This document shows positions 5,546 through 28,504 of a stretch of DNA of 64,000 nt, in pieces. The notes beneath the pieces were generated by a model. That model had not been told where the DNA came from. It did no database searches and saw nothing but the letters and a program-made list of their open reading frames with translations. The position numbers and the translations under genes are program-made. Every line of letters starts with the position of its first letter. Position 1 is the stretch's first letter. The stretch lies in sequence record NC_047815.1; one strand, written 5' to 3'.

Positions 5546-7489
5546 ATGGGTATTCGAGTAGGACGTGGCGTTTCAGCACAACAGGCTGAGACCAAACAAG
5601 ACGTTCCGAAAAAGAAGAACTCGTCGGTGGGCGTTGCCAGTTTGCCACAAGCGATTGGCAACGCTATTCGTAGTCATAGCTCAAAGAGTCAGCTTGCGGC
5701 TGCCTCAGAGTTTCGTTCGCAATCAGCGGGCGGTCAAGCAATGGCTGGTGGGAGTATGCAGACAGGTGCAATCCCACTAGACATTGACCTTGAGCCTATG
5801 ATGGAAGGCATGGATTATGATGCCGACGACCGACAGCTATTCAACGTCTATCGTGATATTTATAACTTTGACCCGATTTGTGGCGCGTATGTAGACCTGT
5901 TCTCAACCCTGCCATTCTCCGATGTGAGTTTCAGCGGTGCTAAGGACAGTATTCTCGACCCGTACTATGAAATGAACGAGCGTCTTGGACTAACGTCTGC
6001 GATGCCGAATATTACTACTGACATTCAGGTTACAGGTGCCTTTGTTGGTTCGATGCTGTACAACAAAGACAAAAAGAAATTCATCGATATGATGACGCAC
6101 CGCTATGATAACTTGGACGTCACAAGTCTGCCGTTTCTTTCTCAAGACCCTATGTTTGAACTGCGTATTCCACGCGAAGTAAAGCAGGCGTTTGGCAAAG
6201 AAGGCAAGCGTATGGATGCGTTGCGCAAAGAGCTTGGTCCATCGTTTGTTGACAAGATTATGAATGAAGCAACGATGGAACTTGACCCTATCGGAACAAT
6301 CTATATTCCTCGCAAGACGTTTACGTTTGGTGAAGGAGTATCAGTGTTTCGTCGCGTGCTGCCCATCTGGTTGATTGAAAAGAATCTGTATCGTGGAACG
6401 CTTATCGAGTCAGGCAGACGTCAACGTGGTATTCTTCACGCCCAGCTTGGTGATGGCGATCAGTGGGAACCCTCTACCGAAGAGATGGACTTTATCACTG
6501 ACTTGCTGTTGTCAGCAGACAGCGACCCTATTGGTTCAATCATCACAACACGTCTCGGTGTGAACATCAGTGAGTTCCGTCAAGGCGGTGATTTCTGGAA
6601 GATTACCGATATCTGGGACCAGACCTCGCAGTTTAAGATGCGTGCTATGGGTATCAGTGAAGCATTCCTCAGTGGTGAAGCGAACTACGATAGCGGTGCT
6701 GCTGGACTGACTATCTTTGTTGAGTCTATGCGTGCTTTCCGCGACCATCTTACTCGCAAGGTCTACTACGAGAAAGCGTTCCCTATTATCAGTCTCATGA
6801 ATGGTCTGGCAGTTCAAAAGAACGGCAAGATTATCAAAAAGAGCGGCATGATGGACGGCGATACTCAAGAGATCATGCATCGTCTTGCAGATGGCAGCAA
6901 GCTGTTTATTCCTAACGTTCACTGGTCTAAGCAACTCAAGCCTGATGTAGACCAAGCAATGATGGAAAACTTGCGTACAATGACAGAGCTTGGTGTGCCT
7001 GTTCCGCTGCGTGCTATTGCCGCTGCTGGTGGCTTTAACTTTGATCAGTTACTGATGGACCAAGACGAAGACATTGCAATGCGCCGCAAGCTAGGTGCGT
7101 TCCACAAGCGTCAGCAAGAAGTTGATCGTGAGTTTGCTCTGCCAGAAGCTGGTATGGACAGCGAGAGCAGTGCGTTCCAGTCAACGTCTAGCACATCACG
7201 CAACAGACCCATTGCTGGCTTTGGTGCAAGTTCTGTTATTGGTAGCGGTCGTCGTAAACACTTGCTTGACCGTGATTACGGTGAACGTTCCGAAATCTTC
7301 GAGCTGTCCAAGACAGGCAAGAAGAAGCATGTGTTCCGTCAGGCAGTTGCTCAACAGCGTGCCAATGACCACATCATGAAAAGTATCAAGAACTATGATG
7401 AGCATCGTACCATGCCTCTTGATACAGGTAAAGTAAGCCGTAAAGCCACGCCAGGGGAATTACGAGCACTTCGTAAGGGGATGCGCTGA
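5546..7489 (+). CDS. putative portal protein
   Basis: 647 aa, close downstream of terminase, helical core with flexible termini; position and size only, no diagnostic motif recognised. Confidence 0.55.
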   Translation: MGIRVGRGVSAQQAETKQDVPKKKNSSVGVASLPQAIGNAIRSHSSKSQLAAASEFRSQSAGGQAMAGGSMQTGAIPLDIDLEPMMEGMDYDADDRQLFNVYRDIYNFDPICGAYVDLFSTLPFSDVSFSGAKDSILDPYYEMNERLGLTSAMPNITTDIQVTGAFVGSMLYNKDKKKFIDMMTHRYDNLDVTSLPFLSQDPMFELRIPREVKQAFGKEGKRMDALRKELGPSFVDKIMNEATMELDPIGTIYIPRKTFTFGEGVSVFRRVLPIWLIEKNLYRGTLIESGRRQRGILHAQLGDGDQWEPSTEEMDFITDLLLSADSDPIGSIITTRLGVNISEFRQGGDFWKITDIWDQTSQFKMRAMGISEAFLSGEANYDSGAAGLTIFVESMRAFRDHLTRKVYYEKAFPIISLMNGLAVQKNGKIIKKSGMMDGDTQEIMHRLADGSKLFIPNVHWSKQLKPDVDQAMMENLRTMTELGVPVPLRAIAAAGGFNFDQLLMDQDEDIAMRRKLGAFHKRQQEVDREFALPEAGMDSESSAFQSTSSTSRNRPIAGFGASSVIGSGRRKHLLDRDYGERSEIFELSKTGKKKHVFRQAVAQQRANDHIMKSIKNYDEHRTMPLDTGKVSRKATPGELRALRKGMR

Positions 7490-12084: not shown

Positions 12085-12092
12085 CTGTAAAT
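12085..12092 (+). promoter_or_regulatory. putative phage promoter CTGTAAAT upstream of cmoA-like gene
   Basis: Recurrent + strand motif, intergenic here. Confidence 0.6.
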
Positions 12093-12157: not shown

Positions 12158-12931
12158 ATGAACGTAGATAAAACAATGCCACAAGGCAAATGGGAGTTTG
12201 ATGAACCCGTAGCCGCTGTGTTCGACAGCATGTTGCAAAACAGTATTCCTTCTTATGATCGTATGCGTGACCTGACATATCGTATCGGTCGCAAGTTCGT
12301 GCAGCCTGGAACAACCATCGTTGACTTAGGCGCATCGCTGGGTCGTGCCATTGAACCGTTTGCCGAAGAGTTCGGTGCGTATCTCGCGTCACCGCATCAC
12401 GTTAATGGCGAAGTCAGTGACATTATCGAAACAGGCAACTACTATGATCTGTACGAAGTCAGTGATCCGATGCGCAGCCGTCTCGTTCAAAACGAAGTGT
12501 TGCAATCCGTACGCGCTGAACTCCGTGATGAAAGCCTTGTAGATGTGCAAGACTTTGCTCGTAATAACGGTGCTGGTTGTAGCCTGATTCTCAGCGTGTT
12601 GACTCTCCAGTTCACTCCGCTTGAGCATCGCCAGCGCATCCTTGATCGTATCAGCAACAGTCTCAACGCTGGTGGTGCTTTCATTCTTGTTGAGAAAGTA
12701 TTGGGTGATTCGCACGCGCTTGATGACATGATGGTCGATGTGTACTACAGCATGAAAGGCGATAACGGTTATACCAAAGAAGCCATTGCCGCCAAGCGCA
12801 AGTCATTAGAAGGTGTATTGGTTCCGATGAAAGCAAGTTGGAACGAAGAACTGTTGCGTCAAGCAGGCTTCCGTCATGTTGATTGCTTCTATCGTGACTT
12901 GAACTTCGCTGGTTGGATTGCAGTTAAATAA
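12158..12931 (+). CDS. cmoA: carboxy-S-adenosyl-L-methionine synthase (CmoA-like)
   Basis: End-to-end match to the CmoA pattern: WEFDEPVAAVFDSMLQNSIPSY, VQPGTTIVDLGASLG, LTLQF, GGAFILVEK, KGDNGY...KRKSLEGVL, LRQAGF, LNFAGWIAVK. Confidence 0.85.
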   Translation: MNVDKTMPQGKWEFDEPVAAVFDSMLQNSIPSYDRMRDLTYRIGRKFVQPGTTIVDLGASLGRAIEPFAEEFGAYLASPHHVNGEVSDIIETGNYYDLYEVSDPMRSRLVQNEVLQSVRAELRDESLVDVQDFARNNGAGCSLILSVLTLQFTPLEHRQRILDRISNSLNAGGAFILVEKVLGDSHALDDMMVDVYYSMKGDNGYTKEAIAAKRKSLEGVLVPMKASWNEELLRQAGFRHVDCFYRDLNFAGWIAVK

Positions 12932-12940
12932 GGAGCGGTT

Positions 12941-13816
12941 ATGAGTACCACAGCCGCAATGCGCGAGAAGATTCGTGCTGGTGTAATCGAAAGTCACAAC
13001 AAGCCTGTTGATATGCGACAGGCTTTGATGGACACGCTTGCTTGGATTCCTAAAGACGACCAAGTGACTGTGTTTATGTCTGGTGGCATTGATAGTCATG
13101 CATGTTTATTTGCTGCTATTGATCTCGGACTGAAAGTTAACGTGCTTTCTTTTACGCTTGATACGCATGAATCAGCAGACTTTAAATCAGCACGTCACGC
13201 AGCAGAAGTGTTTGACCTCAAGTTTATCCCTATCGTGTTGCCTACCAACGAGCAACATTTAAAAAGCTGGGTTAAGTTTGCAGTCCACAAGTTGGGTCTA
13301 TCAAACAAAAGTGAAATCGAATGTAGCTGGCCGTTGTATTCAGCTATCCGTGCGCTTGAGCAGATGGGTGAGACCAAGCATATCGTGTTAGGTCTTGGTG
13401 GTGACAGCTACTTCCTCATGGCCAAGAGCGCATCAATGCACTGCAAAGACCTTGTGCTTGAGCAGCGACGCAAAGCTACTCGCCGTGTACTTAGTCAGAA
13501 CACACTGGTAAAGCGTGAGGCATTCGCACGAGGCATCTACGCACACCTGCCCTACTACGAGCTTGGTCGTGTGTATGCTGAATTGCAGATGGAAACAGAC
13601 TTCAAGAAGATCAACAGTCCTCAGAAGTCTTTCTACAATCAAGCATTTCCTGAATACCGCAAGCGTTGTAAAGTACGTGGTCATCAGAACTTCCAGCTGG
13701 GCGACACCAACATCAGCGGTATCTTTAGCGAAGTGTTGTTGAAGTCTGATTGGAACACAAGAAATTTAAAGGCCATTACAGGCATTTATAATGATGTAGC
13801 CGCTGGAATTATTTAA
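12941..13816 (+). CDS. asparagine-synthetase-like ATP-dependent amide ligase lacking the glutaminase domain
   Basis: PP-loop FMSGGIDS, LSFTL, D...ARHAAEVFDL, VLGLGGDSYF (cf. SGEGADELF), HLPY, NFQLG; only 291 aa. Confidence 0.75.
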   Translation: MSTTAAMREKIRAGVIESHNKPVDMRQALMDTLAWIPKDDQVTVFMSGGIDSHACLFAAIDLGLKVNVLSFTLDTHESADFKSARHAAEVFDLKFIPIVLPTNEQHLKSWVKFAVHKLGLSNKSEIECSWPLYSAIRALEQMGETKHIVLGLGGDSYFLMAKSASMHCKDLVLEQRRKATRRVLSQNTLVKREAFARGIYAHLPYYELGRVYAELQMETDFKKINSPQKSFYNQAFPEYRKRCKVRGHQNFQLGDTNISGIFSEVLLKSDWNTRNLKAITGIYNDVAAGII

Positions 13817-13834: not shown

Positions 13835-13842
13835 CTGTAAAT
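13835..13842 (+). promoter_or_regulatory. putative phage promoter CTGTAAAT upstream of the DPA-repeat peptide gene
   Basis: AAAACTGTAAATA, intergenic. Confidence 0.6.
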
Positions 13843-13912
13843 ACTAATTTGAGAAAGCATATTATTTGTAGACTCAAGTACATACCATCAATCCTATAAC
13901 AGGAGTTATACC

Positions 13913-14047
13913 ATGCGTAATCGTTTTGATCCAGCAGCTAAAGCAGACCCAGCAATCGTTGACCCAGCTGATCCAGCAATGTTTGATCCAGCAGACCCTG
14001 CTGATCCAGCGATGATCGACCCAGCTGATCCAGCAGCTCGCTTCTAA
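13913..14047 (+). CDS. 44-aa Asp-Pro-Ala repeat peptide (absent from the ORF track)
   Basis: MRNRFDPAAKADPAIVDPADPAMFDPADPADPAMIDPADPAARF; AGGAG RBS at 13901; synonymous codon variation between repeat units; own promoter-like motif and terminator. Confidence 0.85.
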   Translation: MRNRFDPAAKADPAIVDPADPAMFDPADPADPAMIDPADPAARF

Positions 14048-14059
14048 GCAAAAACCCAG

Positions 14060-14085
14060 AGGGTGGCCAATCGGCTGCCCTTTTT
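14060..14085 (+). terminator. intrinsic terminator
   Basis: AGGGTGGCC-AATC-GGCTGCCCT followed by TTTT. Confidence 0.75.
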
Positions 14086-14103
14086 CTTGTCAGAGGTTAT
14101 GTC

Positions 14104-14745
14104 ATGACTACACAACTCGTTAACAACATCCCACTAATCCATACCCAACGTTGCCACAATGTCAGCAGCGTAGACCACACACCGTTATTTGTCTATCACA
14201 ACTTCTTTTCTGACGACATGTGTGCCGCACTGATAGCAGAAGCACAGCAGTACCTCGAACCAAGCCGTGTAGGCGGTCCAAACAATACAACTAAAATCGA
14301 CCGTTCGGTACGCAGTTCCAGCACAGCTATGTTAAGCGAAGTGAGCACAGCGCCTTGTGTGCTTGAAGCAATCAAACTGATCGACCTTGCTTATGGTCAT
14401 CCTCATCTGAACAGCAACCCACTCCAGTTCAATCAATATCAAACCGGTGAAGAATTCAAAGCGCATCATGATTGGCATAATCCTGAAACGCAGCAAGCAC
14501 GTATTGAACTCGAAGGTCAACGTACCTGGACTTTCTTGATGTATCTCAACGAGGACTTCGATGGCGGCACGACAGTGTTCCCTCATCTGGACATTGAAAT
14601 CATGCCTCAACGTGGTATGCTTGTTGCGTGGAACAATCTGAATGCAGATGGTAGTGTTAACATCGCAACAGAACACGCATCCCAGCCGGTAGTACGTGGT
14701 ACAAAGTACATGATGACCAAGTGGTTTAAAAACAAAGTTTTATAA
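14104..14745 (+). CDS. 2OG-Fe(II) oxygenase, prolyl-4-hydroxylase-like
   Basis: RSSSTA, LQFNQYQTGEEFKAHHD (HxD), RTWTFLMYLNEDFDGGTTVFP, distal H in TEHASQPV, TKYMMTKW. Confidence 0.9.
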   Translation: MTTQLVNNIPLIHTQRCHNVSSVDHTPLFVYHNFFSDDMCAALIAEAQQYLEPSRVGGPNNTTKIDRSVRSSSTAMLSEVSTAPCVLEAIKLIDLAYGHPHLNSNPLQFNQYQTGEEFKAHHDWHNPETQQARIELEGQRTWTFLMYLNEDFDGGTTVFPHLDIEIMPQRGMLVAWNNLNADGSVNIATEHASQPVVRGTKYMMTKWFKNKVL

Positions 14746-14828: not shown

Positions 14829-15071
14829 ATGCTATTCTTAGCCTGCCTTTTCTACGCGCTGTTTGGCCTGCTGTTTGTAGCAGGTATGCTGGTAACTTTA
14901 GGTGGCTACTTTATTAAACATGGCTATCACAACTTACTCAAATATGAATTACCCGACGACTTTGAGGAAGTAATCACAAAGCGTTGGTCAGCAATGGTTA
15001 CTGTGCTTGGTGTTTTATGTTTGGTGTGCCACTTGCTGTACACCATCTTCTGGTACTTAGGCACTCATTAG
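14829..15071 (+). CDS. small two-TM membrane protein
   Basis: Two hydrophobic segments; AGGA RBS. Confidence 0.7.
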   Translation: MLFLACLFYALFGLLFVAGMLVTLGGYFIKHGYHNLLKYELPDDFEEVITKRWSAMVTVLGVLCLVCHLLYTIFWYLGTH

Positions 15072-16047: not shown

Positions 16048-16506
16048 ATGAGTCCGTTTTCAATACTACAACGTCAGGTTGTCCGAGCCTTAACCGGAGA
16101 AGCCAACCTTGAACCAGAAGAACGTGCGTTGTTTGACTGGCGATTCGTAGTAGACGTTGGTGGCAAGTTTTATACAGTCGGTAAAACTGGTGCAAACACT
16201 GTGTATTACATGACACCAGAAATGACTGAGCCAGTACCGTGCTATCCAGACCAGATAGCTGAAATCATTACAGGTTGGGCCAAGCCTAAATATATCAGTT
16301 ATATGATTTGCCACAAACGTTTCGATAACGTCAAGCTGGACAATATCAAAACTGAACAGGAAGCCTTGCGTAAGGTGCCTAAGACGTTTCATGACAAGAC
16401 GTTTATTGTTGGTATCACGTCGAAAGGCAAGCGCCACAAGCTGTATCGTCTGCAAGCTGGACTTAACGGTAATGCCTGGGTACCAGTCAGCGAAGAATCA
16501 GAATAG
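16048..16506 (+). CDS. hypothetical protein
   Basis: 152 aa, flanked by promoter-like motif and terminator. Confidence 0.7.
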   Translation: MSPFSILQRQVVRALTGEANLEPEERALFDWRFVVDVGGKFYTVGKTGANTVYYMTPEMTEPVPCYPDQIAEIITGWAKPKYISYMICHKRFDNVKLDNIKTEQEALRKVPKTFHDKTFIVGITSKGKRHKLYRLQAGLNGNAWVPVSEESE

Positions 16507-25705: not shown

Positions 25706-26386
25706 ATGTCAACCACCAAAGTGAAAGTTAAAAAGAAAACTGGTAAAGGTGCTATTTCGCTCAAAGATCTAAAAGACGTAAAGCAACTTAAAGGTGCATC
25801 GTATAACCCACGCATCATTACCGATCGTCGTCTCAAAGACCTCGAAAAGTCTTTAGGTGCATTCGGTGACCTGTCAGGTGTTGTGTTCAACAACAACGTA
25901 AACAGTGGCGTGATGATTTCAGGCCACCAGCGTATCAGCAGTATCAAAGGTTGGAAGACACGTATTGAAGTGCAGCAGACCTCAGATGATCATGGCACTG
26001 TTGGTCTTGGCTTTATTCATGCTACCAGCCCTAAGGGCAAAAAGATTAGCATCCCACTGCGTGTTGTAGATTGGTCAGACAAGAAAGCAGAGTTTGCTGC
26101 TAACATTGCCGCCAACGCACACGGCGGTGAGTTTGATAACAAGAAACTTGCCAAGCTGGTTGAAAAGCTGGACATGAGCAAGATGCCAAGCGCCCTGATT
26201 GGTCTTGACCCGCTTCATATTCGCGGTCTGCAACAAAAGCTGATCAAAGATGGTGTGCCGCCAGAAAAAGCTGGTCGTACTACTGGTACCATGAACGGTG
26301 CAAGCGGTCAGTTCAACGAAGCAACAGTTGAAGACGTTGGTTCGGGTATGCAGCACAAGTGCCCACGTTGTAACTTCTCCTGGTAA
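25706..26386 (+). CDS. ParB/Srx-like N-terminal domain protein with C-terminal Cys motif
   Basis: LKGASYNPR, SLGAFG, MISGHQR, AANAHGGEFD; terminal HKCPRCNFSW. Confidence 0.75.
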   Translation: MSTTKVKVKKKTGKGAISLKDLKDVKQLKGASYNPRIITDRRLKDLEKSLGAFGDLSGVVFNNNVNSGVMISGHQRISSIKGWKTRIEVQQTSDDHGTVGLGFIHATSPKGKKISIPLRVVDWSDKKAEFAANIAANAHGGEFDNKKLAKLVEKLDMSKMPSALIGLDPLHIRGLQQKLIKDGVPPEKAGRTTGTMNGASGQFNEATVEDVGSGMQHKCPRCNFSW

Positions 26387-26395
26387 GGAACGTAC

Positions 26396-28504
26396 ATGCT
26401 TATCAAGCCACCTACTATGGCAGAGATTAACGCCCTGAAAAAGACTTGGACGGGCATGAGTTTCTTTGCTGGTTGTGGTGGTTCAAGCACGGGTCATAAA
26501 ATGAGCGGTATCGACATTCTTGTATCAAACGAGTTTGTCGATATTGCCCGCGACACCTATGCACTGAATCATCCAACAACAAAAGTGCTTGGTCAGGACA
26601 TTCGACGTCTTGACCCGAAAAAGATTCTGAATTTTAAAGGACTGAGTGTCGGCGAACTTGATTTGCTTGACGGCAGTCCTCCTTGCTTTCTCAAAGATAC
26701 CTTGATTCATACAGCAACCGGTATGCGCTACATCGACGCTATTCAAGCTGGTGATCTTGTGATGACGCATGAAGGTCGTTATCGTCGTGTTGTAGAACCA
26801 ATGCAGCGTCCGTATACTGGACCTATGCATCGCATTCAGACAACTATCGGTGAGAACGTAGCAACACCTGAGCACCCGTTCTATGTGCGTCGCATGAATG
26901 GCGGTGTGCTTGGTGCACCTGAATGGATTGATGCTCGTGATGTTCGTGCCGGTGATCGTGTTGCTACACCAACAGCAAGCCATGCGTCAGCCGCTAGCAA
27001 TGAGTCTAATCCTGTACTTGCTGCTTGGATGGAGATTCCTGAGTTCTGGTGGCTGTGTGGTCATTGGGTATCGAACGGTACTATCGAACAGGTCGGTCGC
27101 TATCGTGGTATCAAGTTCACAACACCGCGTGGGGGCCGCGCTAACCAACTGCTTGAGCAGGCTGTTGATACCTTAGGGTTCAGCACTATTCAAACAGCTC
27201 ATCAGACTGGTCAGTACATTGAACGTTTCATGATGGACGACACCTTGTTATCGTTCCTTGAGCGTTTCCTCACTGACACTGAATATGCACGTCAGATCCC
27301 AGGCACGGTGTTCCATCTTGACTCGTTCCTAAAGCGTGAGTTTATTTACGGCTTCCAGTCACGTTGTGCGTCTACCTCTTATGGTAAGACGCTGGTGGTG
27401 CAGACGCGTACCGCTCGATTCATGACTGGCATGAAATATCTGATTGCCTCCGCGTTTGGTTGCCCGCTGTTCGATCTCAGCCCGAACGTGACAACGGAAG
27501 AGATTCCACCTCATAGCTTTACGTTCCGTCCTGACTCAGACTTTGCGCAGCATGTTCGCTACACCACAGTGTTCTATCTTGATGATGCCGATCGTGGTTT
27601 CATTCGTGATGATACTGGTCACTTGTGGGTTGATGTTCTTGCCAACAACACGTCCGAAGTTGATACCGCAGTGTATAACTTTAGCGTAGCAGAGGACGAG
27701 ACCTACGTTGCCAACAACACTGTGGTGCACAACTGCAAAGGCTTCTCAACGTCTGGTGTGCAGCAAGATGGCTGGGGCAAAGAGGTCAAGTACAGCGAGA
27801 ACATCTATCAGCAGGTCGATGACTTGTTTGATGAGTTCTGCCGTATGCTGGGCGGTATCATGCCCAAGACCTTCACAGCAGAAAACGTTAGCGGTCTTGT
27901 TAAAGGTGCGTCGAAAGGTTACTTCCTTGAGATCATGAAAACGTTTGACGAGCTGGGCTATTATGTACGTGCACCGATACTCAACAGCAGTTGGTTAGGT
28001 GTTCCGCAGTCGCGTGAGCGTATCATCTTTATGGGTGTACGCAAAGACATAGCGAAAAAGCTCAAGCTACCTCAGAACTCTCAAGCTGTGCCAAGTGTTG
28101 TTCCGCAAGCAACACAAACAATGTTGGCTGATGCCCTGCCTCACATAGCAGGCTACAAGTCAACGCAGAAAGAGATCATCAAGTACAAGCCAGCAACAAA
28201 CGGTCCGATGCCAACAATCACAGCGGCAGATGCCATTGCTTATGAGACAGCACGATTCTCATCGGCAGGGTTTATCGAACTGCTTGACGGTACGAGGCGC
28301 AAGCTGACCATTGATGAACTGATTGTTGTTTCAGGCATGCCGAGTGATTACAAACTGCTTGGTACGTTTGAGCAACAGTGGGAACGTCTGGGGCGTGTAT
28401 GCGTTCCAGCAATGACCCACAACGCGTCGAAGGCATTGATCGAGAACATCTTGATTCCGTATGCCCGTGCGCGTAAGAAACAGCCGGGAGAGATCTTCCG
28501 CTAG
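26396..28504 (+). CDS. C5-cytosine DNA methyltransferase family protein with intein; probable carboxymethyltransferase (motif X GR)
   Basis: Motif I FFAGCGG, motif IV GSPP|C (split by intein), VI AENVSG, VIII GVPQSRERI, IX RRKLTIDE, X WERLGRVCVP. Confidence 0.9.
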   Translation: MLIKPPTMAEINALKKTWTGMSFFAGCGGSSTGHKMSGIDILVSNEFVDIARDTYALNHPTTKVLGQDIRRLDPKKILNFKGLSVGELDLLDGSPPCFLKDTLIHTATGMRYIDAIQAGDLVMTHEGRYRRVVEPMQRPYTGPMHRIQTTIGENVATPEHPFYVRRMNGGVLGAPEWIDARDVRAGDRVATPTASHASAASNESNPVLAAWMEIPEFWWLCGHWVSNGTIEQVGRYRGIKFTTPRGGRANQLLEQAVDTLGFSTIQTAHQTGQYIERFMMDDTLLSFLERFLTDTEYARQIPGTVFHLDSFLKREFIYGFQSRCASTSYGKTLVVQTRTARFMTGMKYLIASAFGCPLFDLSPNVTTEEIPPHSFTFRPDSDFAQHVRYTTVFYLDDADRGFIRDDTGHLWVDVLANNTSEVDTAVYNFSVAEDETYVANNTVVHNCKGFSTSGVQQDGWGKEVKYSENIYQQVDDLFDEFCRMLGGIMPKTFTAENVSGLVKGASKGYFLEIMKTFDELGYYVRAPILNSSWLGVPQSRERIIFMGVRKDIAKKLKLPQNSQAVPSVVPQATQTMLADALPHIAGYKSTQKEIIKYKPATNGPMPTITAADAIAYETARFSSAGFIELLDGTRRKLTIDELIVVSGMPSDYKLLGTFEQQWERLGRVCVPAMTHNASKALIENILIPYARARKKQPGEIFR
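26684..27733 (+). mobile_element. intein (350 aa) with degenerate LAGLIDADG domain
   Basis: Starts CFLKDTLI, block B ATPEHPF, ends VYNFSVAEDETYVANNTVVHN followed by Cys (+1); blocks C/E-like LCGHWVSNG and FIYGFQSRC lack the catalytic acids. Confidence 0.92.

Follow-up and report, generated by a model that had tools for sequence, protein, structure and literature searches.

The 64,000-nucleotide stretch of DNA analysed here, called the window below, comprises bases 1-64000 of the Erwinia jumbo phage vB_EamM_Yoloswag, to whose records KY448244 and NC_047815 it is 100% identical. Our subject is gp17 (12941-13816, + strand), annotated as the coding sequence (CDS) HOR66_gp017, "hypothetical protein", which encodes a 291-residue putative AMP-forming amide ligase of the CmoY family, together with its neighbours and the genes of its predicted pathway: a CmoA homologue directly upstream (gp16), a repeat peptide and a prolyl 4-hydroxylase (P4H) homologue directly downstream (gp18 and gp19), and a ParB-like protein and a CmoX homologue farther along (gp42 and gp43). 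The gp17 reading frame begins with ATG, has an AAGGAG ribosome-binding site 6 nt 5′ of its start, and is separated from the gp16 stop codon by 9 nt.

The gp17 protein is an asparagine-synthetase-type PP-loop synthetase domain without the glutaminase half. Its PP-loop reads S47-G-G-I-D-S52 (nt 13079-13096). Pfam matches residues 38-158 weakly to Asn_synthase (PF00733) and finds QueC (PF06508) over the PP-loop only, at profile positions 3-61 of 210. Because only ~37 residues precede the synthetase region matched from residue 38 on, there is no N-terminal nucleophile (Ntn) glutaminase domain. Scores against curated models were low: 25.9 bits for TIGR01536 (E = 5e-6; cut-off 267.1), 20.6 for the asparagine synthetase B model PRK09431 (cut-off 499), 24.4 for the QueC model TIGR00364 (cut-off 150.3) and 16.2 for the macrolactam-cyclase model NF033561 (cut-off 300). 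A search of solved structures with the gp17 sequence alone gave only a marginal match to NAD synthetase, and profile and fold searches were needed to find the relationship to AsnB.

With 29 homologues, AlphaFold2 produced a confident model of gp17 (predicted local distance difference test score, pLDDT, 93.4; predicted template-modelling score, pTM, 0.90). Its best structural neighbour is the C-terminal synthetase domain of E. coli AsnB (1ct9; template-modelling (TM) score 0.68-0.70), and beta-lactam synthetase (1jgt/1mc1), human ASNS and carbapenam synthetase (1q15) also match; for AsnB and the beta-lactam and carbapenam synthetases, the shared fold corresponds to TM scores of 0.6-0.7 and the sequence identity to 13-21%. 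A profile of 35 gp17-family members covers AsnB residues 200-440 (E = 1e-11); none of the 35 deviates in the PP-loop or in the residues that correspond to AsnB G347, D351 and K429. In this respect gp17 resembles the characterised synthetases, and the presumed chemistry is common to both: an acyl-adenylate forms, and a nitrogen nucleophile then attacks it. It differs from them in having neither an N-terminal glutaminase nor a pseudo-glutaminase, in the Leu that the family alignment places at the AsnB E348 position, and in an invariant His that aligns with K443 of beta-lactam synthetase. The preliminary description of this DNA had recognised gp17 as the PP-loop synthetase half only (SGGIDS), and Pfam, the predicted fold and the AsnB profile alignment all agree with it; the enzyme class that it proposed, a glutaminase-less AsnB-type adenylating amide ligase, is likewise supported by the sequence and the structural model.

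The closest characterised counterparts of these genes come from a pathway described for one cyanophage, Synechococcus phage S-B43 (Yang et al., Nat Commun, December 2025; PMC12783734). There, CmoA produces carboxy-S-adenosylmethionine (carboxy-SAM, Cx-SAM); SpCmoX, a C5-methyltransferase homologue with an SPPC motif, binds the carboxymethyl group through Arg R350 (N304 in HhaI) and generates 5-carboxymethylcytosine (5cxmC) in DNA; and SpCmoY, a glutaminase-less asparagine-synthetase homologue, ligates glycine to 5cxmC-DNA with ATP, for which the evidence came from E. coli, from in vitro reactions and from phage DNA (PMC12783734). The same authors reported that ParBc proteins often accompany CmoX, and they left open which amines other ligase clusters use, suggesting that other amines are possible (PMC12783734).

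Homology between gp17 and SpCmoY extends over the full length of these domain-only proteins (28% identity over 261 residues, E = 2e-19; BLASTP, residues 36-288 vs 14-263), and tblastn with gp17 also finds the S-B43 ligase gene. The two proteins have equal architecture and size (~270-290 aa, a PP-loop, no glutaminase), each gene has a phage cmoA as its neighbour, and each genome further encodes a ParB-like protein and a CmoX with SPPC and the Cx-SAM-binding Arg. They differ in that their identity is low and gp17 falls into a separate clade (100/99 support). By every criterion testable in silico, gp17 is a member of the CmoY family.

Yoloswag holds the full published parts list, in two places (12.1-13.8 kb and 25.7-28.5 kb). 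In the first, gp16 (12158-12931, + strand) is a predicted carboxy-SAM synthase (TIGR00740, E = 2e-39; 28% identity to SpCmoA, E = 2e-28), in agreement with the cmoA gene that had been noted upstream of gp17 in the preliminary description. In the second, gp43 (26396-28504, + strand), annotated as "modification methylase NgoFVII", is an intein-interrupted CmoX homologue and thus a putative DNA cytosine C5-carboxymethyltransferase. It aligns with SpCmoX in two blocks, residues 18-97 (53% identity) and residues 447-685 (32%), and carries the motifs SPP-C (divided by the intein), ENV, QSRER and ERLGR, the Arg of the last being aligned to R350 of the SpCmoX ERVGR350. It is preceded by gp42 (25706-26386, + strand), ParB-like by annotation; a gp42-type gene stands directly 5′ of CmoX also in the contigs L012-L014, L022 and L027-L032 and in phage PaBG. 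The arrangement differs from that of S-B43, in which cmoA, cmoX and cmoY are contiguous: the Yoloswag cmoX lies 12.6 kb downstream of gp17 and bears an intein, and S-B43 lacks the Pro/Asp-repeat peptide gene and the P4H homologue that come after the Yoloswag ligase.

The gp43 intein (26684-27733, + strand; class 1, 350 aa, C97...VVHN446) is recognised by the Pfam models Hint_2, Intein_splicing and PT-HINT over residues 96-446. It begins C97FLKDTLIH, ends VVHN446 and is followed by C447 as the +1 residue, so that it is inserted just before the catalytic Cys of CmoX. Since splicing would restore DGSPP-CKGFSTSG, the +1 Cys of the junction appears to be the catalytic Cys of the transferase itself, and gp43 is predicted to act only after protein splicing. 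In L014, CmoX (765 aa) is interrupted at the equivalent site by an intein that includes a LAGLIDADG domain.

Both Cmo gene groups are preceded by the motif CTGTAAA, which is found 21 times in the window (10.4 expected), 19 times on the + strand. Its copies include those at 12085, 13835, 14795, 16009, 16554, 22576 and 25661, and it stands just 5′ of the starts of gp16 (cmoA), gp18, gp24, gp25, gp38, gp42 (the ParB-cmoX pair) and dam; it is likely a phage-specific promoter element. The copy at 12085-12091 (+ strand) lies upstream of gp16-gp17 and that at 13835-13841 (+ strand) upstream of gp18, and a CTGTAAA after the ligase stop codon is kept in phage Y3 and in L014, L026, L027, L032 and L033.

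Evidence from other genomes ties the family to the same pathway. An exhaustive profile search yielded 221 representative clusters at E<1e-30, nearly all of 255-320 aa. The ligase has CmoA and a C5-methyltransferase as neighbours in ~30 contigs of viral or metagenomic origin, and in phages that are otherwise unrelated. The order is CmoA-ligase-methyltransferase in Staphylococcus siphovirus F1 and ParB, methyltransferase, CmoA, a gp24-like gene, ligase in the Pseudomonas jumbo phage PaBG; relatives of gp17 beside CmoA and a C5-methyltransferase were also found in Erwinia, Dickeya and Yersinia jumbo phages. All CmoX homologues of the jumbo-phage lineage carry both SPPC and ER[LI]GR. In four representative proteins (P0058, P0063, P0085 and P0163; 608-701 aa), an N-terminal C5-cytosine DNA methylase is fused to a C-terminal CmoY-type ligase domain, and these fusions provide independent evidence that the family acts on DNA cytosines together with the transferase. 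In the ligase tree, the gp17 clade comprises 19 sequences that are 47-100% identical to gp17 (100/99 support), and a long branch parts it from the Alexandravirus, PaBG and S-B43 types.

Given the SpCmoY homology, the complete set of pathway parts, the synteny and the fusions, gp17 most likely takes 5cxmC in phage DNA as its acyl substrate. Such a substrate, a nucleobase carboxylate in DNA, would set gp17 apart from AsnB-type synthetases, which act on a free amino acid. A comparable logic is known from the tRNA lysidine and agmatidine synthetases TilS and TiaS, in which ATP-dependent activation of a cytidine is followed by attack of an amino acid or amine; TilS is a PP-loop enzyme and TiaS is not. 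These enzymes differ from gp17 in that their target is C2 of tRNA C34, not a C5 side-chain carboxylate in DNA, and beyond the PP-loop we detected no specific homology.

The region immediately downstream of gp17 holds a second, quite different pair of genes. The first, gp18 (13913-14047, + strand; AGGAG ribosome-binding site at 13902-13906), encodes a 44-aa Pro/Asp-repeat peptide with nine DPA units and nine Asp. It is followed directly by an intrinsic terminator (14058-14090, + strand) with an 11-bp stem and a T-run. Among the 35 DPA units of four orthologous genes, differences occur at third codon positions only; because of this pattern, and because they have their own Shine-Dalgarno sequences and their own intrinsic terminators, we regard the repeat-peptide open reading frames (ORFs) as genuine genes. 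The peptide with nine Asp that had been proposed immediately after the ligase is thus a real 44-aa gene.

The second gene, gp19 (14104-14745, + strand), encodes a peptidyl P4H homologue of the 2-oxoglutarate (2OG)/Fe(II) oxygenase type (PF13640, E = 1e-15, 58.4 bits against a cut-off of 27). Its closest solved structure is the Bacillus anthracis P4H (3itq/5hv0, E = 2.7e-20), and other solved relatives are human C-P4H alpha-2, Chlamydomonas P4H-1 and PBCV-1 P4H (7zsc, 2jig and 5c5t among the matches). It carries the complete H-x-D...H...(+10)K motif, read as "AHHDW ... TEHASQPVVRGTK", and we predict that it has the activity of a collagen-type P4H. Because this homologue is encoded next to a Pro-repeat peptide, gp18 is the natural candidate for its substrate. 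The pairing recalls PBCV-1, whose P4H has virus-encoded proline-rich repeat substrates: in Yoloswag, too, a virus-encoded collagen-type P4H, related also to that of B. anthracis, accompanies short Pro-containing repeats. It differs in that the candidate substrate here is a free-standing acidic peptide of 22-49 aa, encoded just upstream of the P4H within a DNA-hypermodification cluster.

A terminator hairpin stands 3′ of every orthologous peptide gene, 10-50 nt after the stop codon. No CTGTAAA motif lies between the gp18 terminator and gp19, whose expression apparently depends on read-through of that terminator, and the layout resembles that of a precursor peptide followed by its modifying enzyme. 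The gp18 region gave no significant match to an Rfam leader family, and RNA folding of it predicted no alternative antiterminator structure.

We inspected 15 genomic contexts of the gp17 clade. In ten of them (Yoloswag, Y3, L012, L013, L014, L026, L027, L028, L029 and L032), the ligase gene is followed directly by a short repeat ORF and then by a gp19 homologue, and the repeat peptide and the P4H were never found apart. The repeat ORFs encode 22-49 aa and evolve fast: the Pro/acid unit shifts between lineages (DPA, EPE, NPE, APE, DPE), with DPA repeats in Yoloswag, Y3, L012, L013 and L026, and other peptides in L014 (MKNYEPEMTSKFDEPEEPE...), L027 (MRNPEINPEINPE...), L028 (MRNAPEIAPEIAPE...), L029 (MRTCNPERNPENPE...) and L032 (MFNFDPEMTFDPEITFDPE...). 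Each repeat unit has one Pro and one or two acidic residues. The acidic peptides share no conserved Lys, their N-termini are not conserved, and that of L032 has no Lys or Arg at all. The position of cmoA shifts around this block: it is upstream of ligase, peptide and P4H in Yoloswag, L014, L029 and L032, whereas in L012, L013, L027 and L028 the peptide gene and the P4H separate the ligase from cmoA, and cmoX flanks the ligase on its other side. A comparison of Y3 with the Alexandraviruses shows the peptide-P4H pair inserted exactly between the ligase and a backbone gene.

In the other five contexts, P4H and repeat peptide are both absent: L022/L038, L031 and L033 are nested within the peptide-bearing part of the tree, and L030 is basal. 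Their ligases are not strongly diverged. Because these five nested or basal lineages keep the ligase without P4H or repeat peptide, we consider the module accessory and the peptide not obligatory for the ligase. In two of them, 8-aa ORFs with strong ribosome-binding sites and hairpins lie 3′ of the ligase (L031:5862-5888 and 5971-5997, MSIGGEGY, duplicated; L033:5977-6003, MRNDKNPF), and these may be remnants of a repeat-peptide gene. We rejected Salmonella phage Sen-NF (L003, PV359490) as a further small-ORF case: in the stretch examined, the annotated CDSs abut without intergenic bases, and because they look concatenated head-to-tail the record is useless for intergenic features. The "RecA" protein of Sen-NF (822 aa; 827 aa in L026) holds an intein-like insertion (CFSADTKL...VSHNS).

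A sister ligase clade (~36% identity) has a different short gene after the ligase, encoding a basic, Gly/Ala/Lys/Pro-rich peptide of 32-51 aa, for example MRAIDLHALAGGGGGAAKPKAAPAKKKKKKKR (L036:6078-6230, L037:2836-2934, L053:687-842). These peptides share an N-terminal part, LHAxAxGGG, and a histone-H1-like AKP/KKK tail, and their genes have their own terminators; no P4H is present beside the ligases of L036, L037 and L053. Word-based searches for P4H homologues outside Cmo clusters reached close relatives only, all of them on ligase-bearing contigs, and two distant phage P4Hs that we also inspected for adjacent repeat peptides were uninformative. The S-B43 paper mentions no peptide, oxygenase or intein (PMC12783734), and our literature searches gave nothing further on these. 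The triad of ligase, repeat peptide and P4H is new, clade-specific and previously unremarked.

Several other genes keep company with these clusters. Homologues of gp24 (16048-16506, + strand; 152 aa) are found at the Cmo clusters of related phages. In PaBG (L006:5464-5916, PaBG gp307) and L036 (L036:4577-4999) they separate cmoA from the ligase, and they adjoin the cluster in L012-L014, L022, L029-L032, L038, L041 and L051. gp24 matched no Pfam family and had no convincing atlas fold neighbour. A DUF1611 protein with P-loop and Rossmann-like domains is encoded beside the ligase in AD1 (L009:3977-5032) and L022 (4962-5974), and a 418-aa, weakly glycosyltransferase-like protein in L030 (L030:2680-3936); these neighbours may represent alternative hypermodification steps or donor-supplying functions. 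In L029, a 293-kb phage contig, a gene for a type II chorismate mutase (L029:4718-5161) lies between cmoX and cmoA, and because chorismate mutase yields prephenate, the co-substrate of CmoA, it would feed CmoA. In Yoloswag the P4H gene is followed by gp20 (14829-15071), which encodes 80 aa with two predicted transmembrane segments; a conserved backbone gene (~205 aa) takes this position in Y3 and the Alexandraviruses. The genome papers on PaBG and AD1 report no DNA modification data, and among public sequencing runs, in which we sought RNA or native-DNA evidence, we found one metagenome with 5% of the words.

How might these components work together? The evidence made in this analysis consists of homology, fold, gene content and synteny; the chemistry comes from the literature on the S-B43 orthologues, and we infer every catalytic step in Yoloswag. 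gp16 would turn S-adenosylmethionine (SAM) and prephenate into carboxy-SAM, and gp43, once its intein is spliced out, would move the carboxymethyl group to C5 of phage DNA cytosines to form 5cxmC. The PP-loop of gp17 would then adenylate the 5cxmC carboxylate with ATP, and a free amine would attack the acyl-adenylate, giving an amide-type hypermodified cytosine. Glycine, another amino acid, ammonia or a similar small molecule would most likely serve as the amine, and the modified base presumably shields the genome from host nucleases. We consider it probable, if by no means certain, that gp17 acts in this way, like SpCmoY with a small free amine, gp18 and gp19 being an accessory pair. As enzyme and substrate, the latter two would have been inherited along with the gp17 ligase clade; the little-diverged ligases of the lineages without the module fit such an accessory role.

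Three observations weigh against this interpretation. Identity between gp17 and SpCmoY is just 28%, which would place the two in different similarity clusters at the threshold used in the S-B43 study, where other amines were suggested (PMC12783734). cmoX is 12.6 kb away from gp17, and its product would be active only after protein splicing. Finally, a simple small-amine model does not account for a peptide gene and a P4H that keep their place directly behind the ligase and that separate it from cmoA in four loci.

Where the preliminary description left the acceptor unknown, the SpCmoY homologue makes 5cxmC-DNA the most likely one. It had named DNA, the peptide or a conjugate of the two as possible substrates: DNA is favoured by the characterised SpCmoY, and for the peptide the evidence points both ways, the conserved block speaking for it and the module losses against it. 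It correctly named the neighbours cmoA and the peptide gene; it missed the putative carboxymethyltransferase gp43, 12.6 kb downstream, and the P4H nature of gp19.

The question of what gp18 does can be asked separately from that of the amine. gp18 may be no ligase substrate at all, with gp17 still acting like SpCmoY: it could be a leader or attenuator that tunes gp19, or an unrelated insertion, for example an acidic, DNA-mimicking anti-defence peptide stiffened by hydroxyproline. The terminator 10-50 nt after the short ORF and the missing promoter motif before gp19 suit a regulatory role, and the exact insertion seen between Y3 and the Alexandraviruses and the loss of the module in nested lineages suit either form of the idea. 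A regulator is harder to reconcile with the variable distance between stop codon and terminator, with the failure to predict an antiterminator fold or to match an Rfam leader family, and with the ten-out-of-ten co-occurrence of peptide and P4H, which speaks for an enzyme-substrate pair more than for a pure regulator. Overall we think a non-substrate gp18 rather unlikely, though well worth keeping in mind; this estimate is separate from the one given for the small-amine reaction, with which it is compatible and to which it is no alternative.

A true alternative is that the peptide itself becomes part of the DNA modification. gp19 would hydroxylate gp18, and gp17 would join gp18 through its N-terminal amine, or a fragment of it, or released hydroxyproline, to adenylated 5cxmC. 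A phage-encoded hydroxylated peptide would then be, or would supply, the nucleophile, and the product would be peptide- or hydroxyproline-decorated DNA with a genetically encoded donor, the corresponding donor in the sister clade being the basic Gly/Ala/Lys/Pro peptide. Several features make this attractive: the ligase-peptide-P4H block stays intact in ten contexts while the position of cmoA shifts, coding is clear for the peptide genes, each of which brings its own ribosome-binding site and terminator in what resembles a precursor-then-enzyme layout, the sister clade has another short peptide gene after the ligase (L036, L037, L053), and the DUF1611 (AD1, L022) and glycosyltransferase-like (L030) neighbours are compatible with variable donor-supplying modules. 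The same synteny would, however, result from a conserved operon boundary that tolerates insertions, and by the ligase tree peptide and P4H were lost at least two or three times from lineages that kept the ligase. With no conserved Lys in the acidic peptides, the N-terminal amine alone is available (as it must be in L032, since that sequence has no Lys or Arg), and it lies in a segment that is not conserved. Among 21 clade-specific ligase positions compared between lineages with and without peptide and P4H, none tracks the module cleanly as a specificity determinant would. We noted no protease gene next to the cluster in any context that we inspected, and an adduct of 22-49 residues on many cytosines would be ill-suited to packaging, replication and transcription. 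Taken together, these points make a peptide-derived donor distinctly unlikely.

Still less likely, in our estimation, is a reaction on the peptide in the manner of a ribosomally synthesized and post-translationally modified peptide (RiPP), in which gp17 would adenylate side chains of Asp or Glu within the repeat peptide for amidation or cyclisation, possibly onto hydroxyproline hydroxyls, with the DNA remaining 5cxmC or being unrelated. There is precedent within the AsnB family, whose lasso-peptide cyclases act on peptide Asp and Glu side chains and, like gp17, are adenylating enzymes encoded beside a short Asp/Glu-rich peptide gene. In Asp, the side chain is a carboxymethyl group in its own right, and the acidic residues number one or two per repeat, always with a single Pro. 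gp17, however, is about half the size of the ~550-aa lasso-peptide cyclases and lacks their N-terminal domain, in keeping with its score against NF033561, and no RiPP recognition element (RRE) protein or leader peptidase was found among its neighbours as a partner. Moreover, its nearest characterised relative works on DNA, members of its family are fused to DNA methylases, and the ligase is kept where the peptide is gone.

That gp17 is a metabolic, ammonia-dependent asparagine synthetase or a QueC-like 7-deazaguanine enzyme, as its weak resemblance to Asn_synthase and QueC models in Pfam and NCBIfam might suggest, seems to us so improbable as to be negligible, with bit scores far under the TIGR01536 and TIGR00364 cut-offs, a QueC match limited to the PP-loop, Leu at the AsnB E348 position, no queD, queE or dpdA near gp17, and synteny and fusions that indicate DNA cytosine chemistry.

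Our analysis thus predicts that gp17 is a further member of the very recently described CmoY family, and it places Yoloswag, Y3 and uncultured jumbo phages in the CmoA/CmoX/CmoY pathway with all of its parts identified. These phages, some of which are under consideration for biocontrol, infect Erwinia, the fire-blight pathogen, and its relatives. In the ordinary case, amide-modified 5cxmC would be expected in Yoloswag DNA, which bears on its restriction sensitivity, on its sequencing and on phage engineering. If the peptide did prove to be the donor, the system would represent DNA hypermodification with a genetically encoded donor.

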